NCBI GenBank assembly: GCA_028826165.1
Contig: JAPDFW010000136.1
Coordinates: 620,001-684,000 of the forward strand
Direction of reading: 5' to 3'
Origin: Anaeramoeba ignava BMAN
Lineage: Eukaryota > Protista > Anaeramoebae
Length of the DNA: 64,000 bases
Part shown: piece after piece, positions 22 to 12,200 of the stretch
Numbering within the stretch: the stretch's first letter is position 1
How the letters are laid out: every line of letters begins with the position of its first letter
Translations under genes and position numbers: made by a program
Notes under the pieces: model-generated
Database searches by the model: none
Seen by the model: the letters and a program-made list of their open reading frames with translations, nothing else
What the model was told of the DNA's origin: nothing

Positions 22-1172
22 ATGCTTGAATGGGAACAAATAGAACCAACAGGAGACATTCCGCCAAACACATGTAAATGCGGATTTCTTACATTAAACG
101 AAGAACAAATCATAGTATTTGGGGGCTCATCCGGATTTGGGTACAACAACGATATATGGATACTCGATGTCAAAAAGAAGGAATGGAGTCTTATAGAAAC
201 AACGGGAGAGAAGCCTAGTCCACGTTCAGGCGTTACAGCAGTGATCTATAAGGATTCGTTATTTGTATTTGGCGGCTTTGATAGACGCAAATATTACGGT
301 AATTTTTCTCAAAATACTCGTTTTTTTCACAGAAGAAGAGGATCATTTTAGACATAAAAATCATCTTCTTTTTTCTCGCAAACCCAGATTATCACGACTA
401 ATTGTTGGAAAAACTAAATCGTAATGATTATTTCCAAAAAAAATTTACAGGTGATTTTTACAAATTGGATCTGAACACTTGGACATGGAAAGAACTACCA
501 CAAGGCCCTTCAGGTCGCCACTCGCACGTAGGGAATTTGTACGGAGATGACAAGTACATATTTGGCGGGCGGTTGAATACAGAAGGAAAGCGAGCAAACG
601 ATCTGTGGAAATATTCTATAAAATCGGAAAAATGGGAAGAAATGAAGCCATTTGGACATATTCCAAGTGCAAGATCTTCTTTAGTCAGTGCTGTTTTCGA
701 AGATTTGATGTTTATTTTTGGCGGAATTGATGACCAAGAAGAAGGACTGAATGATCTATATTCGTACTCATTTTCAAACAACACTTGGTCACTTATACAC
801 ACACAAGGCGAAGTGGAACCGCCTCTATGCGTTTCTCCCTCGGCGGTTCTCAGCGGCTCGTACCTGCTAGTTATCGGTGGTCAAAATAGAATTAATCATG
901 AAAGATTCGACTTCGATCATGTTTATGCGTTTGATATTCTTCGATCTGAATGGGAAAAATGGGATCCTGCTATTACTAAAAATCAAATGTCAAAGAGAAG
1001 CTGCCACGTTTCTGCAATGGTTGGCTCTAAAGTCGTTGTTTTTGGTGGCGAAGTTCTTGTTCCTGTCTCTTATTATAAACATATGAATGAAGTTTGGATT
1101 TTGCATCTTTTATCTGATCTTGTTAATGATTTGTCTCATTTTCAAAAGGAATTGATTTTTTGTGATGTTTAA
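22..1172 (+). CDS. Kelch-repeat beta-propeller protein; exons 22-298 and 451-1172 (possible further intron 1167-1274, see findings; the 5' end may lie upstream of the window)
   Basis: Six Kelch motifs (hydrophobic-FGG ... ND(L/I)W ... W). A phase-1 intron 299-450 (GTAATT...TTACAG) joins YYG|DFYK in frame. The ATG is preceded by TTTAG, so an upstream exon is possible. Confidence 0.88.
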
Positions 1173-1462: not shown

Positions 1463-3403
1463 TTATTGTTTTTTTGGTTTTGATTTTTTGCAAGTTGGAA
1501 ATAAAGAAAATATAAATTGAAATAAAGAAAGTATAAATTGTAATAAAGTGAGCCAAAAAGTTAGGAAGAACATTAAATTTTTAGATAAGCATAAAAACGG
1601 TTTCATAAAGCAACTGGATTGATTTCTTATTTTTATTTTTAAATTGTTTTGAATATTTTTAATATTTATTTTGAATAATATTTATTTTATTATTTATTTG
1701 GAATAATATTTATTTTTAATATATATTTTGGATATTTATTTTGGATAATATTTATTTTGAATATTATTTATTTTGAATAATATTTATTTTAATATTTATT
1801 TTGGATAATATTTATTTTGGATATTATTTATTTTGGATAATATTTATTTTGAATAATATTTATTTTTAATAATTTATTTTTATTTTTAATGAATAATATT
1901 TATTTTGAATAAATTTATTTTTGAATAATATTATTTATTTTTGAATAATTTTTATTTTATTTATAATATTTATTTTGGAATAATATTTATTTTTGATTTT
2001 TAATATTTATTTTGGAATAATATTTATTTTGAATAATATTTATTTTTGAATAATATTTATTTTGAATTATTTTTATTTTGAATAATATTTATTTTTAATA
2101 TGTTTATTTTTTGAATAATATTTATTTTTGAATAATATTTTTATTTTGAATAATTTTTGAATTTATTTTTGAATAATATTTATTTTTGAATAATATTATT
2201 TATTTTAATATTTATTTTGAATAATATTTATTTTGATATATTTATTTTTGAATATTTATTTTGAATATTTATTTTGGATAATATTTATTTTGGATAATAT
2301 TTTATTTTGAATAATTTTTTTTATTTATTTTGGATAATATTTATTTTGAATAATATTTATTTTGAATAATTTATTTTATTTTGAATAATATTTATTTTGA
2401 ATAATAGTTGTTATTTACTTGAATAATATTTATTTTGAATAATATTTATTTTGGAATATTTTTATTTTGGATAATATTTATTTTATTTTGGAATAATATT
2501 TATTTTGGAATAATATTTATTTTGAATAATATTTATTTTGGAATAATATTTATTTTGGAATAATATTAATATTTATTTTGAATATTTATTTTGAATAATA
2601 TTTATTTTGAATAATATTTATTTTGATTAATATTTATTTTTAATAATATTTATTTTGAATAATATTTATTTTATTATTTATTTTTTGAATATTTTTAATA
2701 TTTATTTTGATTAATATTTATTTTGGATATTATTTATTTTGAATAATATTTATTTTATTATTTATTTTGAATATTATTTATTTTATTATTTATTTTGAAT
2801 ATTATTTATTTTGAATAATATTTATTTTGGATAATATTTATTTTGAATATTTATTTGGAATAATATTTATTTTGAATATTTATTTGGAATAATATTTATT
2901 TTGGAATAATATTTATTTTAGATAATATTTATTTTGAATATTTGTACTTTTGTAATTCACTATCACTTATATCAAGGTTATCCATATCATTTTGACTCAG
3001 AATTTCATCTGTATCACTTGAATCATCCTCTACATCAATTTTTGGTTCTTCTAAATCTTTATCTATTTTAAAAGATTTAGAATCTTTTTTTACTTCAAAA
3101 TCTCTTTGAATTAGAAAATTTTGTCCAATCCAATTTCTCACTTCGGCTTTAATATTATGCTTTCCAATTTTTAAATTAACTACTTTTGGTTTAGTTCTGC
3201 CATTTTCTGTTGGCAATTCCTCTTTTGGCTATTTTTGAATTTTTTAATTTTTTAATTTTTAAATTTTTTAATTTTTAAATTTTTTAATTTTTAAATTTTT
3301 TAATTTTTTAATTTTTAATTTAAACCATCTCATCAATTTGAATTATAACTGTTTGTGCAAATTTTCCATATTTAATTCTAATAGGAATTGTTTCTTCATT
3401 CAT
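1463..3403 (-). CDS. Paralog A of an unknown tail-anchored family (173 aa); exons 3403-3326, 3228-2948, 1625-1463
   Basis: MNEETIPIRIKYGKFAQTVIIQIDEM|PKEELPTENG...LKIGKHNIKAEV... The first intron is GTTTAA..AATAG (phase 0). The second, GTACAA..ATAAG (phase 2), spans the 1.3-kb repeat and joins in frame to a hydrophobic last exon ...CFMKPFLCLSKNLMFFLTFWLTLLQFILSLFQFIFSLFPTCKKSKPKKQ*. Confidence 0.75.
1640..2940. repeat. Degenerate ~16-nt tandem repeat (GAATAATATTTATTTT) filling intron 2 of paralog A
   Basis: Seen directly. G occurs on the + strand and C is almost absent, so the gene's sense strand is nearly G-free. Confidence 0.92.
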
Positions 3404-3610
3404 TTTTTTGAAAAAGGAAAAAAGGAAAAAAAGGAAAAAATGAAAAATTAAAAATGAAAAAATTGTTTCAATTTTCTTTTTGTTTTTAATTAATCAGAAA
3501 TAGATTTTTTTTCTTTTTTTTTTGAAAGGAAAAAGAAAAATTTGGAAAGAAAAATTGGAAAAAGAAAAATTTGAGAATTTTTGATTTGAATCAATTATTT
3601 TCCAAAAAAT

Positions 3611-5459
3611 TCAAAAATAGAAGTGATTCAACTTATTTTTGTTGATTAAATATTTCTTTTTTAAGAAATTCAACGAACTGAACGAAAGATATACGAAAAG
3701 AATCATTAATAATAGCATTCCTATAGGTTTGAAAAATTCCAGAAATATATGAGATATACTTTTTAATTTTTGATTTTGTTGTGGTTCTTCTTGTGGTTTA
3801 ACTTTTTTTGGTTTTTCATAAGTTTTTGGTTTAATTTTTGGTTTTATATGAGGTCTTTTTGGTTTGTTCTCATTTCTTTGTTCAGGTTTTTTTTTTCTAA
3901 AAAATGAAAAAAAAAACTCAAAAATCTTAAATAAAAACAATATTGCTAATATATCTTTGCAAGATTTTTTAATATAATACCCTGAATCGATTCTTTCCTG
4001 CATTTCATCAATCTCATCAATATCATCATTTTCAATTTTAATCTCATTTTGATTTTCATTTTCATTTTGATTTTGATTTTCAATTTTGATTTTGATTTTG
4101 ATTTTGATTTTCATTTTCATTTTCATTTTGATTTTCATTTTGATTTTGATTTTCGTTTTGATTTTCGTTTTGATTTTCATTTTGATTTTCATTTTGATTT
4201 TGATTTTCGTTTTGATTTTCATTTTGATTTTCAATTTCATTTTCATTTTGATTTTCATTTTCGTTTTGATTTTCATTTTGGTTTTGATTTTCATTTTGAT
4301 TTTGATTTTGGTTTTCATTTTGATTTTCATTTTGATTTTCATTTTGATTTTCATTTTGATTTTCATTTTGATTTTCGTTTTGATTTTCAATTTCATTTTG
4401 ATTTTCGTTTTGATTTTCAATTTGGTTTTGATTTTGATTTTCGTTTTGATTTTCATTTTCAATTTGATTTTGATTTTGATTTTCATTTTGATTTTCATTT
4501 TCAATTTCATTTTGATTTTCATTTTCAATTTCATTTTGATTTTCGTTTTGATTTTCATTTTGATTTTCATTTTGATTTTCGTTTTGATTTTCATTTTGAT
4601 TTTGATTTTCATTTTGATTTTCATTTTGATTTTGATTTTCGTTTTGATTTTCGTTTTGATTTTCATTTTGATTTTTGATTTTGATTTTGGTTTTGATTTT
4701 CATTTTGATTTTGATTTTCGATTTTGATTTTCGTTTTGATTTTCATTTTGATTTTGATTTTGATTTTCGTTTTGATTTTGATTTTGATTTTGATTTTGAT
4801 TTTTGATTTTGATTTTGATTTTGATTTTGATTTTGATTTTGATTTTGATTTTGATTTTGATTTTCATTTTTAATTTCGTTTTCAATTTGATTTTGATTTT
4901 GATTTTGATTTTGATTTTGATTTTGATTTTGATTTTGATTTTGATTTTCATTTTTAATTTCGTTTTCAATTTGATTTTGGTTTTGATTTTGGTTTTGATT
5001 TTGATTATCATCTGAATCACCTAAATCATCTGAAACATCTGAATCATCTTCATCTGAATCATCTTGTTTTTCATCTTCATTTTCATAATATCCATCTCCA
5101 TTTTCATAATCTCCATCTTCATTAAAACTAATTGTTGTTGCTTTTGTTATATTAATATTTTTATCAATAGTATTATCTCTATCACTTTTTGACCATTCTT
5201 CCAATAATAGTATAATATGATGTTTCCCTTTTTTTAAATGAAATGTTTTTCTAAAATAAGGGCTTTCGTGATTTAATGCTTCTTTTGGCTAATTTTTTTT
5301 ATTGTTAAATTTTTTGAATGCGAATTTTTTTTATAAATTAAAAAATAAAAAGAAAAATTATAAATTAAAATAAATTCAAACCAAATCATCGATTTTAATT
5401 GAGACTCCTTTTAATTGTTTTCTAATTTGAATTTGAACTGAAACTTCGTCTTCATCCAT
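3611..5459 (-). CDS. Paralog B of the unknown family (~585 aa): head, acidic patch, long N/Q/E stalk and two C-terminal hydrophobic segments; exons 5459-5382 and 5288-3611, with several apparent indels in the repeat
   Basis: MDEDEVSVQIQIRKQLKGVSIKIDDL|PKEALNHESPYFRKTFHLKKGKHHIILLLEEW... The intron is GTTTGA..TTAG (phase 0). The NQ/EN reading hops between track ORFs 4743-5204, 4700-5020, 4080-4703 and 3611-4666. Confidence 0.75.
4030..5010 (-). repeat. Coding hexamer microsatellite (AATCAA/AATGAA/AACGAA) encoding (NQ/NE)n
   Basis: Seen directly as TTTTGA/TTTTCA/TTTTCG units on the + strand. Confidence 0.92.
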
Positions 5460-5702
5460 TTTCTTTTTTTTTTATTATTTAAAAAGGAAAAAAAAAAGGA
5501 AAAATGAAAAAAATGAAAAAAATGATTTTTTAATTTTTTTTTTAACGAAACTTTCTTAAAAATTAAAAATAAAATTAAAAATTAAAATTAAAAATTAAAA
5601 TTAAAATTAAAATAAAAACTTTTGTTTGTTTGTTTGTTTTTGTTTTTGTTTGTTTTTTGAAAAGAAGAAATAAAAAAAAGAAGAATTTTGAGATTTTTTG
5701 AA

Positions 5703-8700
5703 TTAAAGAAACTTTTTCAAAATTTCAAAAAAAGAATTAATCAAATCAACAAAATTATGAATTTTATTTAGCTTGCGATTTTCATAATTTGTAAAACTTC
5801 TGTAAATATTGAATATGAAGAGAATTATCAAGAGAATCATTAGAATACTTAATAGAATTTCTAAAGAGAAGTTGGTAACCTTTTTAGCTACAATTTCAGT
5901 TTTTGTTTCTGGAATTGTTTCTATTTCTTTACCGTGTGAAGTAATATCTGTTTTTGTTGGTTTTGTTATTGGTTTTGTTATTGGTTTTGTTATTGGTTTT
6001 GTTATTGGTTTTGTTATTGGTTTTGTTATTGGTTTTTTATTATATTCTTTTTGTTTTTCTTGTTCTTCTGATTTAATATCTGTTGTTATTGGTTTTGTTA
6101 TTGGTTTTTTATTATCTTCTTTTTGTTTTTCTTCTTCTTGTGATTTAATATCTGTTGTTATTGATTTTGTTATTGGTTTTGTTATTGGTTTATCTTTATC
6201 TTCTTTTTGTTTTTCTTGTTCTTGTGATTTAATATCTGTTGTTGATTTTGTTATTGGTTTTTGATTATCTTTATCTTTATCTTCTTCTTGTGATTTAATA
6301 TCTGTTGTTATTGATTTTGTTATTGGTTTTGTTATTGGTTTATCTTTATCTTCTTTTTGTTTTTCTTGTTCTTGTGAATTAATATCTGTTGTTATTGGTT
6401 TTGTTATTGGTTTTTGATTATCTTGATCTTGTTTTTCTTGTTCTTGTGATTTAATATCTGTTGTTATTGATGTTGTTATTGGTTTTTGATTATCTTGATC
6501 TTGTTTTTCTTGTTCTTGTGAATTAATATCTTGATTTGTTTTTTGTTCTTTTTCTTGTGAATTAAGATTTTGATTTGTTTTTTGTTCTTTTTCTTTTTCT
6601 TTATCTTCATCTTTTTCTTGTGAATTAAGATCTTGATTTGTTTCTGTTTCTTTATCTTGTGAATTAAGATTTTGATTTTTTTCTGTTTCTTTATCTTGTG
6701 AATTAAGATTTTGATTTTGATTTTTTTCTTTTTGTTTTTTTGTGAATTATCTTGATCTTGTTCTTTTTCTTTTTCTTTATCTTTTTCTTGTGAATTAAGA
6801 TTTTGATTTGTTTCTGTTTCTTTATCTTGTGAATTAAGATTTTGATTTGTTTTTTGTTCTTTTTGTTCTTTTTTTTGATTATCTTGATCTTGTTCTTTTT
6901 GTTTTTCTTTTTCTTGTGAATTAAGATCTTGATTTGTTTCTGTTTCTTTATCTTGTGAATTAAGATCTTGATTTGTTTTTTGTTCTTTATCTTGTGAATT
7001 AAGATCTTGATTTGTTTTTTGTTCTTTTTCTTGTGAATTAAGATTTTGATTTGTTTTTTGTTCTTTTTCTTTTCTTTATCTTTTTCTTGTGAATTAAGAT
7101 CTTGATTTGTTTCTGTTTCTTTATCTTGTGAATTAAGATTTTGATTTGTTTTTTGTTCTTTTTGTTCTTTTTTTTGATTATCTTGATCTTGATCTTTTTT
7201 TTGTTTTTCTTTTTCTTGTGAATTAAGATTTTGATTTTTTCTGTTTCTTTTTCTTGTGAATTAAGATCTTGATTTGTTTTTTGTTCTTTTTCTTGTGAAT
7301 TAAGATTTTGATTTGTTTTTTGTTCTTTTTCTTGTGAATTAAGATCTTGATTTGTTTCTGTTTCTTTTTCTTGTGAATTAAGATTTTGATTTGTTTTTTG
7401 TTCTTTTTTTTTCTTGTGAATTAAAATTTTGATTTGTTTCTGTTTCTTTATCTTGTGAATTAAGATTTTGATTTGTTTTTTGTTCTTTTTCTTGTGAATT
7501 AAGATTTTGATTTGTTTTTTGTTCTTTTTGTTCTTTTTTTTGATTATCTTGATCTTGTTCTTTTTTTTGTTTTTCTTTTTCTTGTGAATTAAGATTTTGA
7601 TTTGTTTCTGTTTCTTTATCTTGTGAATTAAGATTTTGATTTGTTTTTTGTTCTTTTTGTTCTTTTTTTTGATTATCTTGTTCTTTTTGTTTCTTGTTCT
7701 TGTGAACGTTTCTTGTGAATTAAGATTTTGATTTGTTTTTGTTCTTTTTGTTCTTTTTGAATTAAGATCATTTGATTTGTTTTTTGTTCTTTTTCTTGTG
7801 AATTAAGATTTTGATTTGTTTCTGTTTCTTTTTCTTGTGAATTAAGATTTTGATTTTTGTTCTTTTGTTCTTTTTGATTTGTTTGTTCTTTTTCTTGTGA
7901 ATTAAGATTTTGATTTGTTTCTGTTTCTTTTTATCTTGTGAATTAAGATTTTGATTTGTTTTTGTTCTTTTTCTTGTGAATTAAGATTTTGATTTGTTTT
8001 TTGTTCTTTTTGTTCTTTTTTTTGATTATCTTGATCTTGTTCTTTTTTTTGTTTTTCTTTTTCTTGTGAATTAAGATCTTGATTTGTTTCTGTTTCTTTA
8101 TCTTGTGAATTAAGATTTTGATTTGTTTTTTGTTCTTTTTGTTCTTTTTCTTGTGGATTAAAATTTTGATTTGTTTCTGTTTCTTTATCTTGTGAATTAA
8201 GATTTTGATTTTTTTTTTGTTCTTTTTGTTCTTTTTTTTGATTATCTTGATCTTGTTCTTTTTTTTGTTTTTCTTTTTCTTGTGGATTAAGATTTTGATT
8301 TGTTTCTGTTTCTTTATCTTGTGAATTAAAATTTTGTGGAGTTTTTTTGAGATTTTGAGATAAAGAAAATATCTTTCTAGCTGAATCTTGAAATGATAAC
8401 TTTTTTATTAATGGAGGATGTTTTTCTGTTTCTAGTTTTCTATTTTTTGAAGGGCTAGTTGGATTTGTTGGAAGTTCAAGAGATTGAGTTAGTCTTTCTT
8501 TTCTAATTTCACGTTTGGAAGATGATTTTCGGTTTAGAGTTTGATTTTGATTATCATTTTGATTATCATTTTGATTATCATTATTATCATTTTCATTTTG
8601 AATTTCATTTTTATTTTGAATTTCATTTTTAATTTCATTTGAATCACCTAAATCATTTGAATCACCTAAATCATTTGAATCACCTAAATCATCTGAATCA

Positions 8701-9140
8701 CCTAAATCATCTGAAACACCTGAATCTTCATCTTCATCTGAATCAACTCGTCTTTCATCTATTAAGAAATTTTTGGAATCTTTATTTACTTCAATTTCTT
8801 TTTGATAAAAAGATGTTTCTCCAACTTTAGGAGTTCGCCATATTTTAACAATATGTTTTCCAGGTCTTAAATTAAACATTTTAATATGAGATAAATTATT
8901 GCTTTTTTTTTGGAGATTTTCTTTTGGCTAAATAAATAAAGTTGTTTTATTTTTATTTTTTTATTATTTTTTTATTATTGGTTCGTTAAAATTTTTGTTT
9001 TTTTGTTTTTTGTTTTTTGTTTTTTGTTTTTGTTGTTTGTGTAAAATGCAAACCATTTCTCCAATTTGAATTGTAACTTTATTATCGTTTCCATGAGTTT
9101 CAAGTGAGATAGGAATTGTTTTTTCTTCTTCTTGACTCAT
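5703..9140 (-). CDS. Paralog C of the unknown family (~1100 aa): head, acidic repeats, very long repetitive stalk and a C-terminal TM helix; exons 9140-9054 and 8927-5703, with multiple indels in the repeat
   Basis: MSQEEEKTIPISLETHGNDNKVTIQIGEM|PKENLQKKSNNLSHIKMFNLRPGKHIVKIW... The intron is GTTTGC..TTTAG (phase 0). The C-terminus reads ...[60 protein letters not shown]. Confidence 0.72.
5950..8340 (-). repeat. Coding minisatellite of paralog C: NLNSQDKETETNQ / NLNSQEKEQKTNQ units, then DIKSQEQEKQ...KPIT units and a 12-nt KPIT array
   Basis: Recurrent TCTTGTGAATTAAGATTTTGATTTG and TTTTGTTATTGG on the + strand. Confidence 0.9.
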
Positions 9141-9243
9141 TATTTCTTAATTTAAAAAAAAAATGGAAAAAAAAAATGATTTTGCTTTTCTTTCTTTTTA
9201 TTTTAAAAAAAAAAAATAATTAATTAATTAATGAATGAATTAA

Positions 9244-12200
9244 TTAAAAAAAAGAATTGATTCGACGAATTTGATGGAAATCAAAAGACTCAAGTTTTTG
9301 TTTGTATTTTTTATCTTTTGATGCTTTTAAGAAAATATCTGATTTCAAAAAAGAGGAATAAGCATTAGAAACAGTTGGAATAATTTCAAAAACGGCTTTT
9401 TGGAAAAGATCTGAATCAGGAATTTCATCAGCAAAATTAATCTCAATTTCATTTCTTGTAATATCGGAAAGAGGAAGAGCTTCTATTGAGTCTTGGGCGA
9501 TGAACCGGTTAAATATGATTTGGGCAAGTTCTTTTTTTTCTTTGCTTCTTTTATCAAGCAAAATATATTGAACAACAAGTTCATAAAAATCAAAAGCAAT
9601 TTGGATATATTCTGACTCTGTATTTGTGAGCCAATCAACAAAATCAGCGCGTAAGTTGAAATCAACAAATAAACGTTGAAGTTTTTGCATGTCGTTTTGA
9701 TCATCAACAACTGCTTCTTTTTCAAACATTTTTAAAACTTCTTCGTCAATTTGATCTGGTTTTTCTGTTTCCAAATTTGCGTTTTGTGAATCAAGAACAA
9801 TTTCCGTTTTTTCATCATCTTCAACATCTGTTTGAGAAAGGGATTCAGTTGATGACATTAGTTTTTCCTCATCCAATTGCATTTTTTCAATTTCTGCCAT
9901 TTCTTGCTCGAAATCTTGAAGCATTTTCAGTGTGGAATCATATTTTGTTAATGGTGCAAATGATTTCCGTAGTTTGAGTGCTTGATTTGATTCTGGAATT
10001 GTGATTTCATTTGCTACTTTTTCATATGATTCAAATCGTGATATTGGTTTTAAATTTGATGTTCTTATTGATTTTGCAATAGGAGATAGTATATTTGCTC
10101 CAAGCATATCTCCTTTGTTTATTTGGTTGACATCAATTTGAAGAGAAGTTGTTTCTTTTTCTTTTTCTTTTTCTTTTTTTGGATCTTTTGAAATTATGTT
10201 TGTTAATCTTGATGATCCTCTTCTATTTTTATCAAGGTGTTTTTGCGGAATATTCGCAATATTATCGAGATCGATATCAATGCTATCAATATCATTATCG
10301 ATTTTGAATTCATTTTCGAATTCATTTTCGAATTCGTTTTCATTTTTATTTATATTTTCATTTTGATTTTCATTTTGATTTTCATTTTGATTTTCATTTT
10401 CATTTTGATTTTCATTTTGATTTTCATTTTGATTTTGATTTTGATTTTCATTTTGTTTTTCACTTTGATTTTGATTTTCACTTTGTTTTTCACTTTGATT
10501 TTTCACTTTGATTTTCGCTTTCAGTCTGTGAATCTTGCTCAAATTGACTCTCAACATCGGAAAATGAATAGAAAAATATCAAAGAAGAAAAAGTAAGAAG
10601 AATTTCGTCAAAACAAAGAGTAATTGAATCATCAAAAGGATTCTTAGCATTCAAAGAAGAATGTTCGACAAAGTTTTGGAAATCAGTATCAAGTGTTGCG
10701 ACAGACAATATTTTGGACGCAAAAGGCTGGAATTCAGTCTCGAGATGGGACTTTGCGGTATCGACGATTTTGGAGAAAAGAGGAATAAGACTGGGGGATT
10801 TTCTTGATTCTTGGAGGAAAATAAGACAGACCTCAAATAAATACTTCATGAATTTAGCAGGAGCATTTGCAATCATTAGCGAGAGAATCTCGATCAGATA
10901 GGAAGCATGCTTTGCGAAGAAGACACGATAGAGCTCGTGGCAGACTTGATAAAGAAAACGGTTTGTGGTTTCGAGGGATAAATCAAGCTGAGGAAAGAAC
11001 CGCTCTTTGAACAAAGAAGACAATCCACGAAGATCCTTTTGGATGATTCGAGTGGCAATGAATTGGGAAAGTGAGATTGCCTCGAGAAGCTCTTGATCAA
11101 TCTCCTTAGCCACAACGCCGAAGAATTTAGACTCAAAAAGATGCATGAACCAAACAAGAAGCGAAATTATTGAAACAAACACGTGGCGTTGGGAAAAATC
11201 AGCGATATTTTCGTGATTGATTGAGATCAATTTAGCTGTCATTTTGAGAGTCTTTTCAAAGGTGGAATAGTAGGAGAAACCGTTGACTAGAAGAGGAAGA
11301 AGACCGTGGAAATATGAGGGCCAAAGACCAGGCATTTCGAAGGGGTTGAGGATGTTGGCGTTGAATTTGACGCCAGTTTGAGAGATGAATTCGACTTGCG
11401 GGAGAAAGTATGTCGATGGCAGCCTCAAATATATTTGAAAAGGGAGAGTCCTTGAGATTCATGAGAAGCACAGAGACCCAAAATAGGTGTGGAAAACGGA
11501 GATGTTTTGTTTGGCGGAGGTCTTGGTCAAGAAGATCCTTGATAACACGGACTAAGCTCGAAAACCGGGTCTGATAGAGAAGCTGATTGCCGCTGTTGTG
11601 TTCGATAGACATGATTTTGTCATTCGATTTCTTGCGCTCGGAAAAGCGTTTGACAAGCATTGTCTTTGTTTTTGTGCGATAGTCGTTATTGCATCTGAGA
11701 AGGAAAAAAATGTTGATCATCATAGTTTTCACGAAATTGATTTCCAGGGAAGATCTAAGCACCGCAAGCACTTGCATTGCGCAGATTGCAAGAAGTGAAT
11801 CAACGCAATATAAACTCCATTTCTGCGCCTCACGTCCCCATTTTTGGAGGACAGATTGCAAAAGATTTGTCTCAAGTGCGCGACGCAACGCAGAGATAAA
11901 ACTATCATAACCAAAGCCCTTGCCATGTGTGGAGCGTAGATCCTCGGGTAGCTCCTCCTGTGGCTGATGCTTCCCAAGATCGACCCAAAATAGAACTGTT
12001 GAGTATCCGGATAATTGCTTGAGAAATCGGACTGTTTTGGAAAGCCGTTCAATTTCTTCTTTTTGATCTGGATCATTTACTTGAACGTGTTCCAGAAGAA
12101 AACCAAAGATTTCCGCAACAAACAATATCGTGTCGGAAAGCTCCTGATCGAATATTCTGCGCTGGCACTTGACACCGATACGCAGAATTGCATAATTAAG

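Follow-up and report, generated by a model that had tools for sequence, protein, structure and literature searches.

The VAP/MOSPD proteins, which act as tethers of the endoplasmic reticulum (ER) through their MSP domain, consist of a small N-terminal cytosolic beta-sandwich, a spacer and a single C-terminal anchor, and have no signal peptide. A comparable layout is encoded by a family of genes that we describe here from the protist Anaeramoeba ignava BMAN. Three of its members, termed A, B and C, stand in tandem on the minus strand of a window of 64,000 nucleotides (nt), namely positions 620,001 to 684,000 of contig JAPDFW010000136.1 in assembly GCA_028826165.1; unless another sequence is named, all coordinates below are positions in this window. 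Unlike the VAP/MOSPD proteins, the members of this family gave no Pfam match to the MSP domain (PF00635), and the top structural matches listed for them include no MSP structure. Their spacer is a low-complexity repeat rather than a coiled coil, and they are not known to have an FFAT-type partner.

Other described proteins resemble the family in one or another of its parts. The N-terminal head shares with the bacterial PEGA, carboxypeptidase-regulatory, PKD, CE2_N and Y_Y_Y domains the pattern v.I.i ... f.L.pGkH.I.v within a sandwich of about 85 amino acids (aa). However, the PEGA and Ig-like domains of bacteria are typically secreted or surface-exposed, whereas the A. ignava head is without a signal peptide and is predicted to face the cytosol. 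STBD1 and the AMPK beta subunit are among its best structural matches, and STBD1 also couples such a module to a membrane anchor; yet the anchor of STBD1 is N-terminal, and the A. ignava head displays neither sequence similarity to it nor conserved sugar-binding aromatics. Finally, like the low-complexity proteins of Plasmodium and Dictyostelium, the family has spacers rich in N, Q, E and K that are derived from micro- or minisatellites and vary between paralogues. It differs from them in that the expansions occupy one fixed position between head and anchor, and in that the array is intronic in gene A.

We conclude that these genes constitute a new orphan family, in which a common type of fold appears in an already familiar head-spacer-anchor arrangement. 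The explanation that we favor, with somewhat better than even confidence, is that this A. ignava family comprises tail-anchored proteins with cytosolic heads on slippage-grown spacers, and that the breaks in the reading frames of B and C are errors of the assembly. In A. ignava BMAN, symbionts of the Desulfobacteraceae reside in a membrane network close to the hydrogenosomes (PMC11550330). The genus is a model for the compartment in which a free-living anaerobe keeps sulfate-reducing symbionts beside its hydrogenosomes, and lineage-specific, membrane-anchored cytosolic adaptors are plausible parts of this cell architecture. The genes described here contribute to the picture a new sequence family, that of small beta-sandwiches with a predicted cytosolic location, and three of them have so far lacked annotation; their practical value is that of a candidate list for localization work.

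Membership and gene structure of the family

Coordinates re-derived from the sequence place gene A at 3403-1463, gene B at 5459-3611 and gene C at 9140-5703. All three begin with a two-exon head of about 85 aa that is interrupted by an intron at the same codon. Pairwise BLASTP comparisons of the heads encoded by exon 2 recovered A and C with 40% identity (E=2e-9), A and B with E=5e-4, and B and C with E=0.002. PKE, L..GKH, one F and one D are invariant in the alignment of the three, and the peptides encoded by exon 1 have M.E...V.I.I in common. The first introns are all of phase 0, start with GTTT(G/A) and end in TAG, with CCAAAAGA directly after. The heads, the junctions and the tandem order are thus real and not a chance resemblance, and the three genes are paralogues. 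An earlier, sequence-only reading of the window had proposed a head shared by the three genes, a phase-0 first intron with a GTTT donor in each, and four exon junctions (3326/3228, 2948/1625, 5382/5288 and 9054/8927). The significant alignments and the invariant motifs uphold the first of these proposals, and on recomputation from the sequence the intron type and every junction proved correct.

Gene A has three exons. Exon 1 (3326..3403; 26 codons) encodes the first two strands of the head and is identical to residues 1-26 of the public protein KAJ5066911.1. Intron 1 (3229..3325; 97 nt, GTTTAA...ATAG), absent from the spliced public model, consists over 3231-3321 of almost nothing but an 8-nt microsatellite, ATTTTTTA, in 11.5 copies. 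Exon 2 (2948..3228) encodes the core of the head from PKE to GKH and then an acidic, Ser-rich patch, with the strands of the structural model extending to residue 81. It is followed by intron 2 (1626..2947; 1322 nt, GTACAA...ATAAG), which is removed in the public model, and by exon 3 (1463..1625), which encodes the anchor (hydrophobic at about 1490-1576), the basic tail KKSKPKKQ and the stop. The GenBank entry KAJ5066911.1 (hypothetical protein M0811_03255, Anaeramoeba ignava, 173 aa), retrieved by a search with exon 2 of gene A, agrees letter for letter with this model. The three-exon structure that had been read from the sequence thus coincides with the public annotation, down to the anchor exon and the 1.3-kb minisatellite intron; we take this annotation as supporting evidence, not proof, for so long an intron. 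Neither M0811_03255 nor its neighbors are mentioned in the supplements of PMC11550330, and an exact look-up of contigs encoding KAJ5066911.1 found nothing on record.

Genes B and C have two exons each. In B, exon 1 (5382..5459; 26 codons) and an intron of 93 nt (5289..5381; GTTTGA...TTAG) are followed by exon 2 (3611..5288), with the head core at 5106-5288, the acidic patch at about 5010-5105 and the stop at 3611-3613. In C, exon 1 (9054..9140; 29 codons) and an intron of 126 nt (8928..9053; GTTTGC...TTAG) are followed by exon 2 (5703..8927), with the head core at 8745-8927, acidic DLGDS repeats at 8635-8744 and the stop at 5703-5705.

A six-frame profile search of the A. ignava assembly (42.8 Mb, 147 contigs) recovered exactly four loci, with E-values from 1.5e-38 to 1.1e-31; besides A, B and C, there is a fourth member on another contig, B2 (minus strand, L004:1923-404, where L004 is G000:C129:66868-70116). 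Flanked by unrelated genes, B2 stems from a recent duplication at the DNA level that took in the complete transcription unit of B together with its 93-nt intron, and not a single substitution separates the two intron copies. B2 has a single frame break, in the acidic patch (L004:1504), after which an unbroken open reading frame (ORF) of 367 aa connects the patch, by way of the stalk, with the anchor. The tail of B2 is shorter than that of B. At the level of sequence, nothing argues more strongly than this ORF for a single gene made up of head, stalk and anchor.

We further searched 1.84 billion representative proteins exhaustively with HMMER, using a profile made of exon-wise rows together with KAJ5066911.1; the exons of B, C and B2 were searched separately, and gene A alone was used in its spliced form, as the public protein. 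The sole true member retrieved was KAJ5066911.1 itself, and no relative outside A. ignava was found among these representatives, A. flamelloides included. The heads of B, C and B2 occur in none of the public protein sets searched, and a query with the B tail matched no annotated protein of 199-633 aa. Three further matches in the exhaustive search were multi-Ig proteins of bacteria (with CE2_N, PKD, Big_3_5 and Y_Y_Y domains), which aligned through many weak stretches of at most 7 bits. These were rejected as members and kept solely as a clue to the fold. As judged by these searches, A, B, C and B2 form a four-member family specific to A. ignava, linked by paralogy and a shared intron. The earlier proposal of a lineage-specific set agrees with this result, and the genome-wide profile search suggested along with it contributed one additional member, B2.

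Elements of the TCATTTTT-type, accompanied by T/C tracts, are present 35-75 nt upstream of the ATG in all family members; in the window, these upstream regions lie at 3410-3470, 5470-5545 and 9150-9200 on the minus strand. The TCATTTTT-type elements are candidates for a promoter element resembling the initiator of parabasalids.

Anchors, acidic patch and stalks

The C-terminal anchors lie at about 1490-1576 in A, 3671-3748 in B and 5802-5858 in C. Their Kyte-Doolittle hydropathy in 19-residue windows peaks at 2.13 in A, 2.23 in B and 2.96 in C, with 8-12, 15-22 and 26-32 residues, respectively, after the segment. In all three proteins the transmembrane segment is situated within about 30-40 residues of the C-terminus, as is characteristic of tail-anchored proteins, and each sequence ends in a basic tail. 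In gene A, the F.KP motif and the hydrophobic helix encoded by exon 3 resemble the anchor of B, and an in-frame 21-nt tandem duplication (1498-1548; 2.4 copies) makes the helix longer by 7 residues. AlphaFold2 predicts a helix at residues 129-161 of 173 with pLDDT >90; this single-sequence model of KAJ5066911.1 is poor in the head (pLDDT about 50-64) and was used for the anchor helix only.

In A and C, the N-terminus is itself the first beta-strand and no transmembrane segment lies upstream of the anchor. B and B2, in contrast, each have one more hydrophobic, partly charged segment (3896-3964 in B), which precedes the anchor by about 50-70 aa and leads into a very basic Pro/Lys linker. Of the topological claims in the sequence-only reading, the hydrophobic C-terminal segment with a basic flank in each gene is corroborated by the hydropathy windows and the basic tails, and the absence of a signal peptide is supported by the lack of room before the first strand. 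Tail anchoring stands in part: it agrees with the C-terminal anchors of all members and the absence of an upstream segment in A and C, but not with the second hydrophobic segment of B and B2. As a general rule, long, very hydrophobic anchors go to the ER, whereas short, moderately hydrophobic ones with basic flanks go to mitochondria-type organelles (PMC7446849). From this precedent we infer that the anchors, that of C above all, look ER-type rather than mitochondrial or hydrogenosomal.

Between head and stalk, B and C both contain the acidic motif DS.VSDDLGDSDD, as had been noted earlier, and gene A shares its core in the form D-[ED]-D-S-x-x-[ST]-D-[DE]-[LI]. The DNA of the patch is about 94% identical between B (5000-5105) and C (8680-8765) over about 85 nt, as against about 40% protein identity in the heads. 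Such conservation could reflect gene conversion along this tract, or else constraint on a linear motif that is probably phosphorylated.

The stalks that follow differ in both length and composition. That of B is encoded by a hexamer array of 160 copies (4046-5006), which yields about 320 aa of N, Q and E. That of C comprises DLGDS repeats, a unique basic region, about 42 units of 13 aa and about 8 KPIT units of 24 aa; the corresponding 39-nt (6504-8320) and 72-nt (5901-6531) arrays together span 5901-8320. In gene A, the same position is taken by intron 2 with its stop-rich 16-nt minisatellite of 79 copies (1660-2940), and removal of this array by splicing may be what gives gene A its short stalk. 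The resulting spacers between head and membrane measure about 45 aa in A, 460 aa in B and 990 aa in C. That stalks of graded length were built independently from different repeats, as the sequence-only reading held, is borne out by the distinct arrays of B and C. Even between B and B2, the stalk differs by about 70 aa and the linker by an indel of 22 aa.

A neighboring, unrelated gene (9244-10557, minus strand) begins with a hexamer-encoded repeat of the same NQNE/NQSEKQ type. Since such a repeat is carried by an unrelated neighbor, the arrays are a property of the genome and not a trait of the family. The A. ignava BMAN genome has an A+T content of 80.65%, which rises to 91.9% in its introns (PMC11550330). 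The family may serve as a clean example of coding stalks built by satellite expansion and apparently made intronic in one paralogue.

Frame breaks and competing explanations

In the explanation that we favor, each protein would consist of an N-terminal beta-sandwich of about 82 aa without a signal peptide, an acidic Ser-rich patch, a low-complexity spacer, the anchor and a short basic tail. The anchor would be inserted post-translationally, leaving head, patch and spacer in the cytosol, and the membrane in question would be that of the ER or of an endomembrane derived from it. The head would then serve as a putative binding module, carried by a tether that is flexible and probably disordered. 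The spacers would have grown by slippage of micro- and minisatellites, a process presumably rampant in so A+T-rich a genome, with their lengths being largely a by-product.

Several observations weigh against this explanation. The proteins have no known ligand, localization or conserved binding surface. B and B2, with two hydrophobic segments, do not appear to be strict tail-anchored proteins. The splicing of B and C and the 1.3-kb intron of A rest on homology and one public annotation, and B and C are missing from the public protein sets that we searched. The head and the anchor of gene B are out of frame as assembled (net +1). The substitutions between B and B2 amount to 15 nonsynonymous and 4 synonymous changes (7 and 0 in the head, where 7 of 87 residues differ; 8 and 4 in the tail), a near-neutral ratio that provides a weak test of selection, and at least one of the pair may be decaying.

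The last of these points leads to the alternative that survives best, though we still regard it as unlikely: only gene A would be functional, and B, C and B2 would be decaying duplicates with real frameshifts in their stalks. As assembled, the stalk of B contains four frame breaks (near 4812, 4722, 4682 and 4086), all +1. That of C contains at least eight (near 7963, 7932, 7790, 7712, 7412, 7245, 7078 and 6752), of which seven are -1 and one is +1. The single break of B2 is a C lost between T and A and hence not a homopolymer miscount. Along with the near-neutral substitutions and the lack of B, C and B2 in the public annotation, these breaks are what decay would predict. However, against at least 12 indels stands a complete lack of in-frame nonsense codons: none occurs among about 1,620 codons, and a single substitution would turn about half of these into a stop. 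This count follows the shifted frames, and the single printed stop falls at a hand-set segment boundary. Moreover, the start codons, splice sites and anchors are all intact, and the eight counted breaks of C sum to 0 mod 3, such that its head and anchor share one frame.

The long unique ORFs of the window, of 2,919 and 1,652 aa, are likewise intact. The BMAN assembly is based on Nanopore reads; Racon and Nanopolish, polishing of the 2017 era, were applied first, and two rounds of Pilon came after (PMC11550330). Because nonsense codons are absent, the breaks run in both directions, the long ORFs are intact and the polishing history is weak, assembly error is the likelier cause, and the frame breaks of B and C are probably uncorrected long-read indel errors rather than real decay. 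That repeat-rich genes of this assembly are broken by indels is a warning for its users.

A second alternative, which we hold to be improbable, concerns gene A alone: its product would be a soluble protein of 125 aa, and the anchor exon an artefact of annotation. The anchor is indeed reached only through intron 2, and if that intron is left unspliced the ORF ends at a stop at 2929-2931. At 1322 nt, the intron is far above the genome mode of 76 nt, the longest being 4,168 nt (PMC11550330), and its donor, GTACAA, is unlike the GTTT donors of the family. Nevertheless, we estimate that at this A+T content chance alone would produce an open frame of 54 codons in less than 1% of cases. The frame of the exon encodes an F.KP motif and a hydrophobic helix as in the anchor of B, the 21-nt duplication within it preserves the frame, and the exon is part of the public model.

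The sequence-only reading had itself gone further and cast the genes as a candidate 'ruler', a set of graded tethers in which one binding head is presented at different distances from a membrane, for instance at organelle or symbiont-compartment contacts. That they hold the head at three set distances, for example between hydrogenosomes and the symbiosome, we consider quite improbable. Low-complexity chains are flexible and set no fixed distance, and stalk length shifts fast between near-identical paralogues. Given a gap of about 70 aa between B and B2 in this respect, repeat slippage explains stalk length better than a calibrated ruler does. It is true that the same head sits on short, medium and long spacers, that the acidic patch beside it is the best-conserved DNA of the B/C pair, and that the hydrogenosomes and symbiont compartments of Anaeramoeba lie close to each other but do not touch (PMC11550330). 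However, the exhaustive search recovered no relative in other organisms, nor in A. flamelloides, the species with a three-dimensional reconstruction of the symbiosome (PMC11550330), the proposed role at organelle or symbiont contact sites found no supporting evidence, and the anchors look ER-type. A lineage-specific tethering system, whose members would place one cytosolic head with a conserved phosphorylatable acidic patch at a short, medium or long distance from an endomembrane and would together help to position hydrogenosomes, symbiosome membranes or storage granules, is to us a long shot.

Fold of the head and neighboring genes

With a small alignment of the family as input, AlphaFold2 models the head as a beta-sandwich of 6-7 strands (pLDDT 84.8, pTM 0.71). 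When the three heads (A, B and C) and KAJ5066911.1:1-95 were compared with Pfam by hmmscan, there was no match to PEGA (PF08308) even at E<=10 and no match to any family at E=0.01, the best being BBS2_pf (0.06) and Y_Y_Y (0.07). A sequence-profile search of the PDB with the head gave chance-level matches only (RFC4 and BF1531). The head thus lies outside the families characterized in these two collections.

Structure searches with the head model retrieved only small beta-sandwiches, with Z no higher than 8 and scores at background level. The best matches were the beta-amylase SBD (TM-score 0.64, Foldseek E 3e-3), the AMPK beta GBD and the STBD1 CBM20 (Z 7.4). As a class, these starch- and glycogen-binding CBM20/CBM48 modules (TM-score 0.64, Z 7.4-7.9) stay at the background expected of small sandwiches, and the transthyretin-like domain of carboxypeptidase D (Z 7.0-7.2) is level with CBM20 and Ig-like folds. 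Further matches included NOMO, DUF6672 and the Ig-like or PEGA-bearing Atlas clusters (TM-score 0.65-0.72; 0.65 for those bearing PEGA).

A profile-profile comparison with hhalign aligned the head to nine repeats of one bacterial multi-Ig protein with 91.7% probability over 51 columns. Such Ig-like repeats of bacteria contain many weak copies of v.I.i, a loop of about 15 residues and then f.L.pGkH.I.v. The nearest neighbors of the head in a protein language model are PEGA clusters, with a score of 0.82 that has the weight of a lead. We therefore describe the modeled head as an Ig-like or PEGA-like beta-sandwich in its shape and in one super-secondary motif, which passes no family test. The PEGA-type head put forward earlier accordingly receives soft support as a fold, through the AlphaFold2 model, the hhalign match, the language-model neighbors and a Z of 7.2, and fails as a family membership by sequence. 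The weakest alternative, that the head is a CBM20/CBM48-like glycan-binding module and that the proteins anchor glycogen to a membrane in the manner of STBD1, draws on those best structural matches but is very unlikely given their background scores, the absence of any CBM family among the Pfam matches and the lack of an aromatic pair invariant in A, B and C, the sole invariant aromatic of the head being one Phe and the Trp being out of register in C.

Just downstream of gene A, and convergent with it, lies an ORF with Kelch repeats of the KLHDC2/KLHL20 type (402-1172, plus strand; E 1e-51). In the same genome, the small-subunit ribosomal RNA gene of A. ignava (G000:C26:17366-19631) is strongly expanded, with 2,266 nt against the 1,831 positions of the model.

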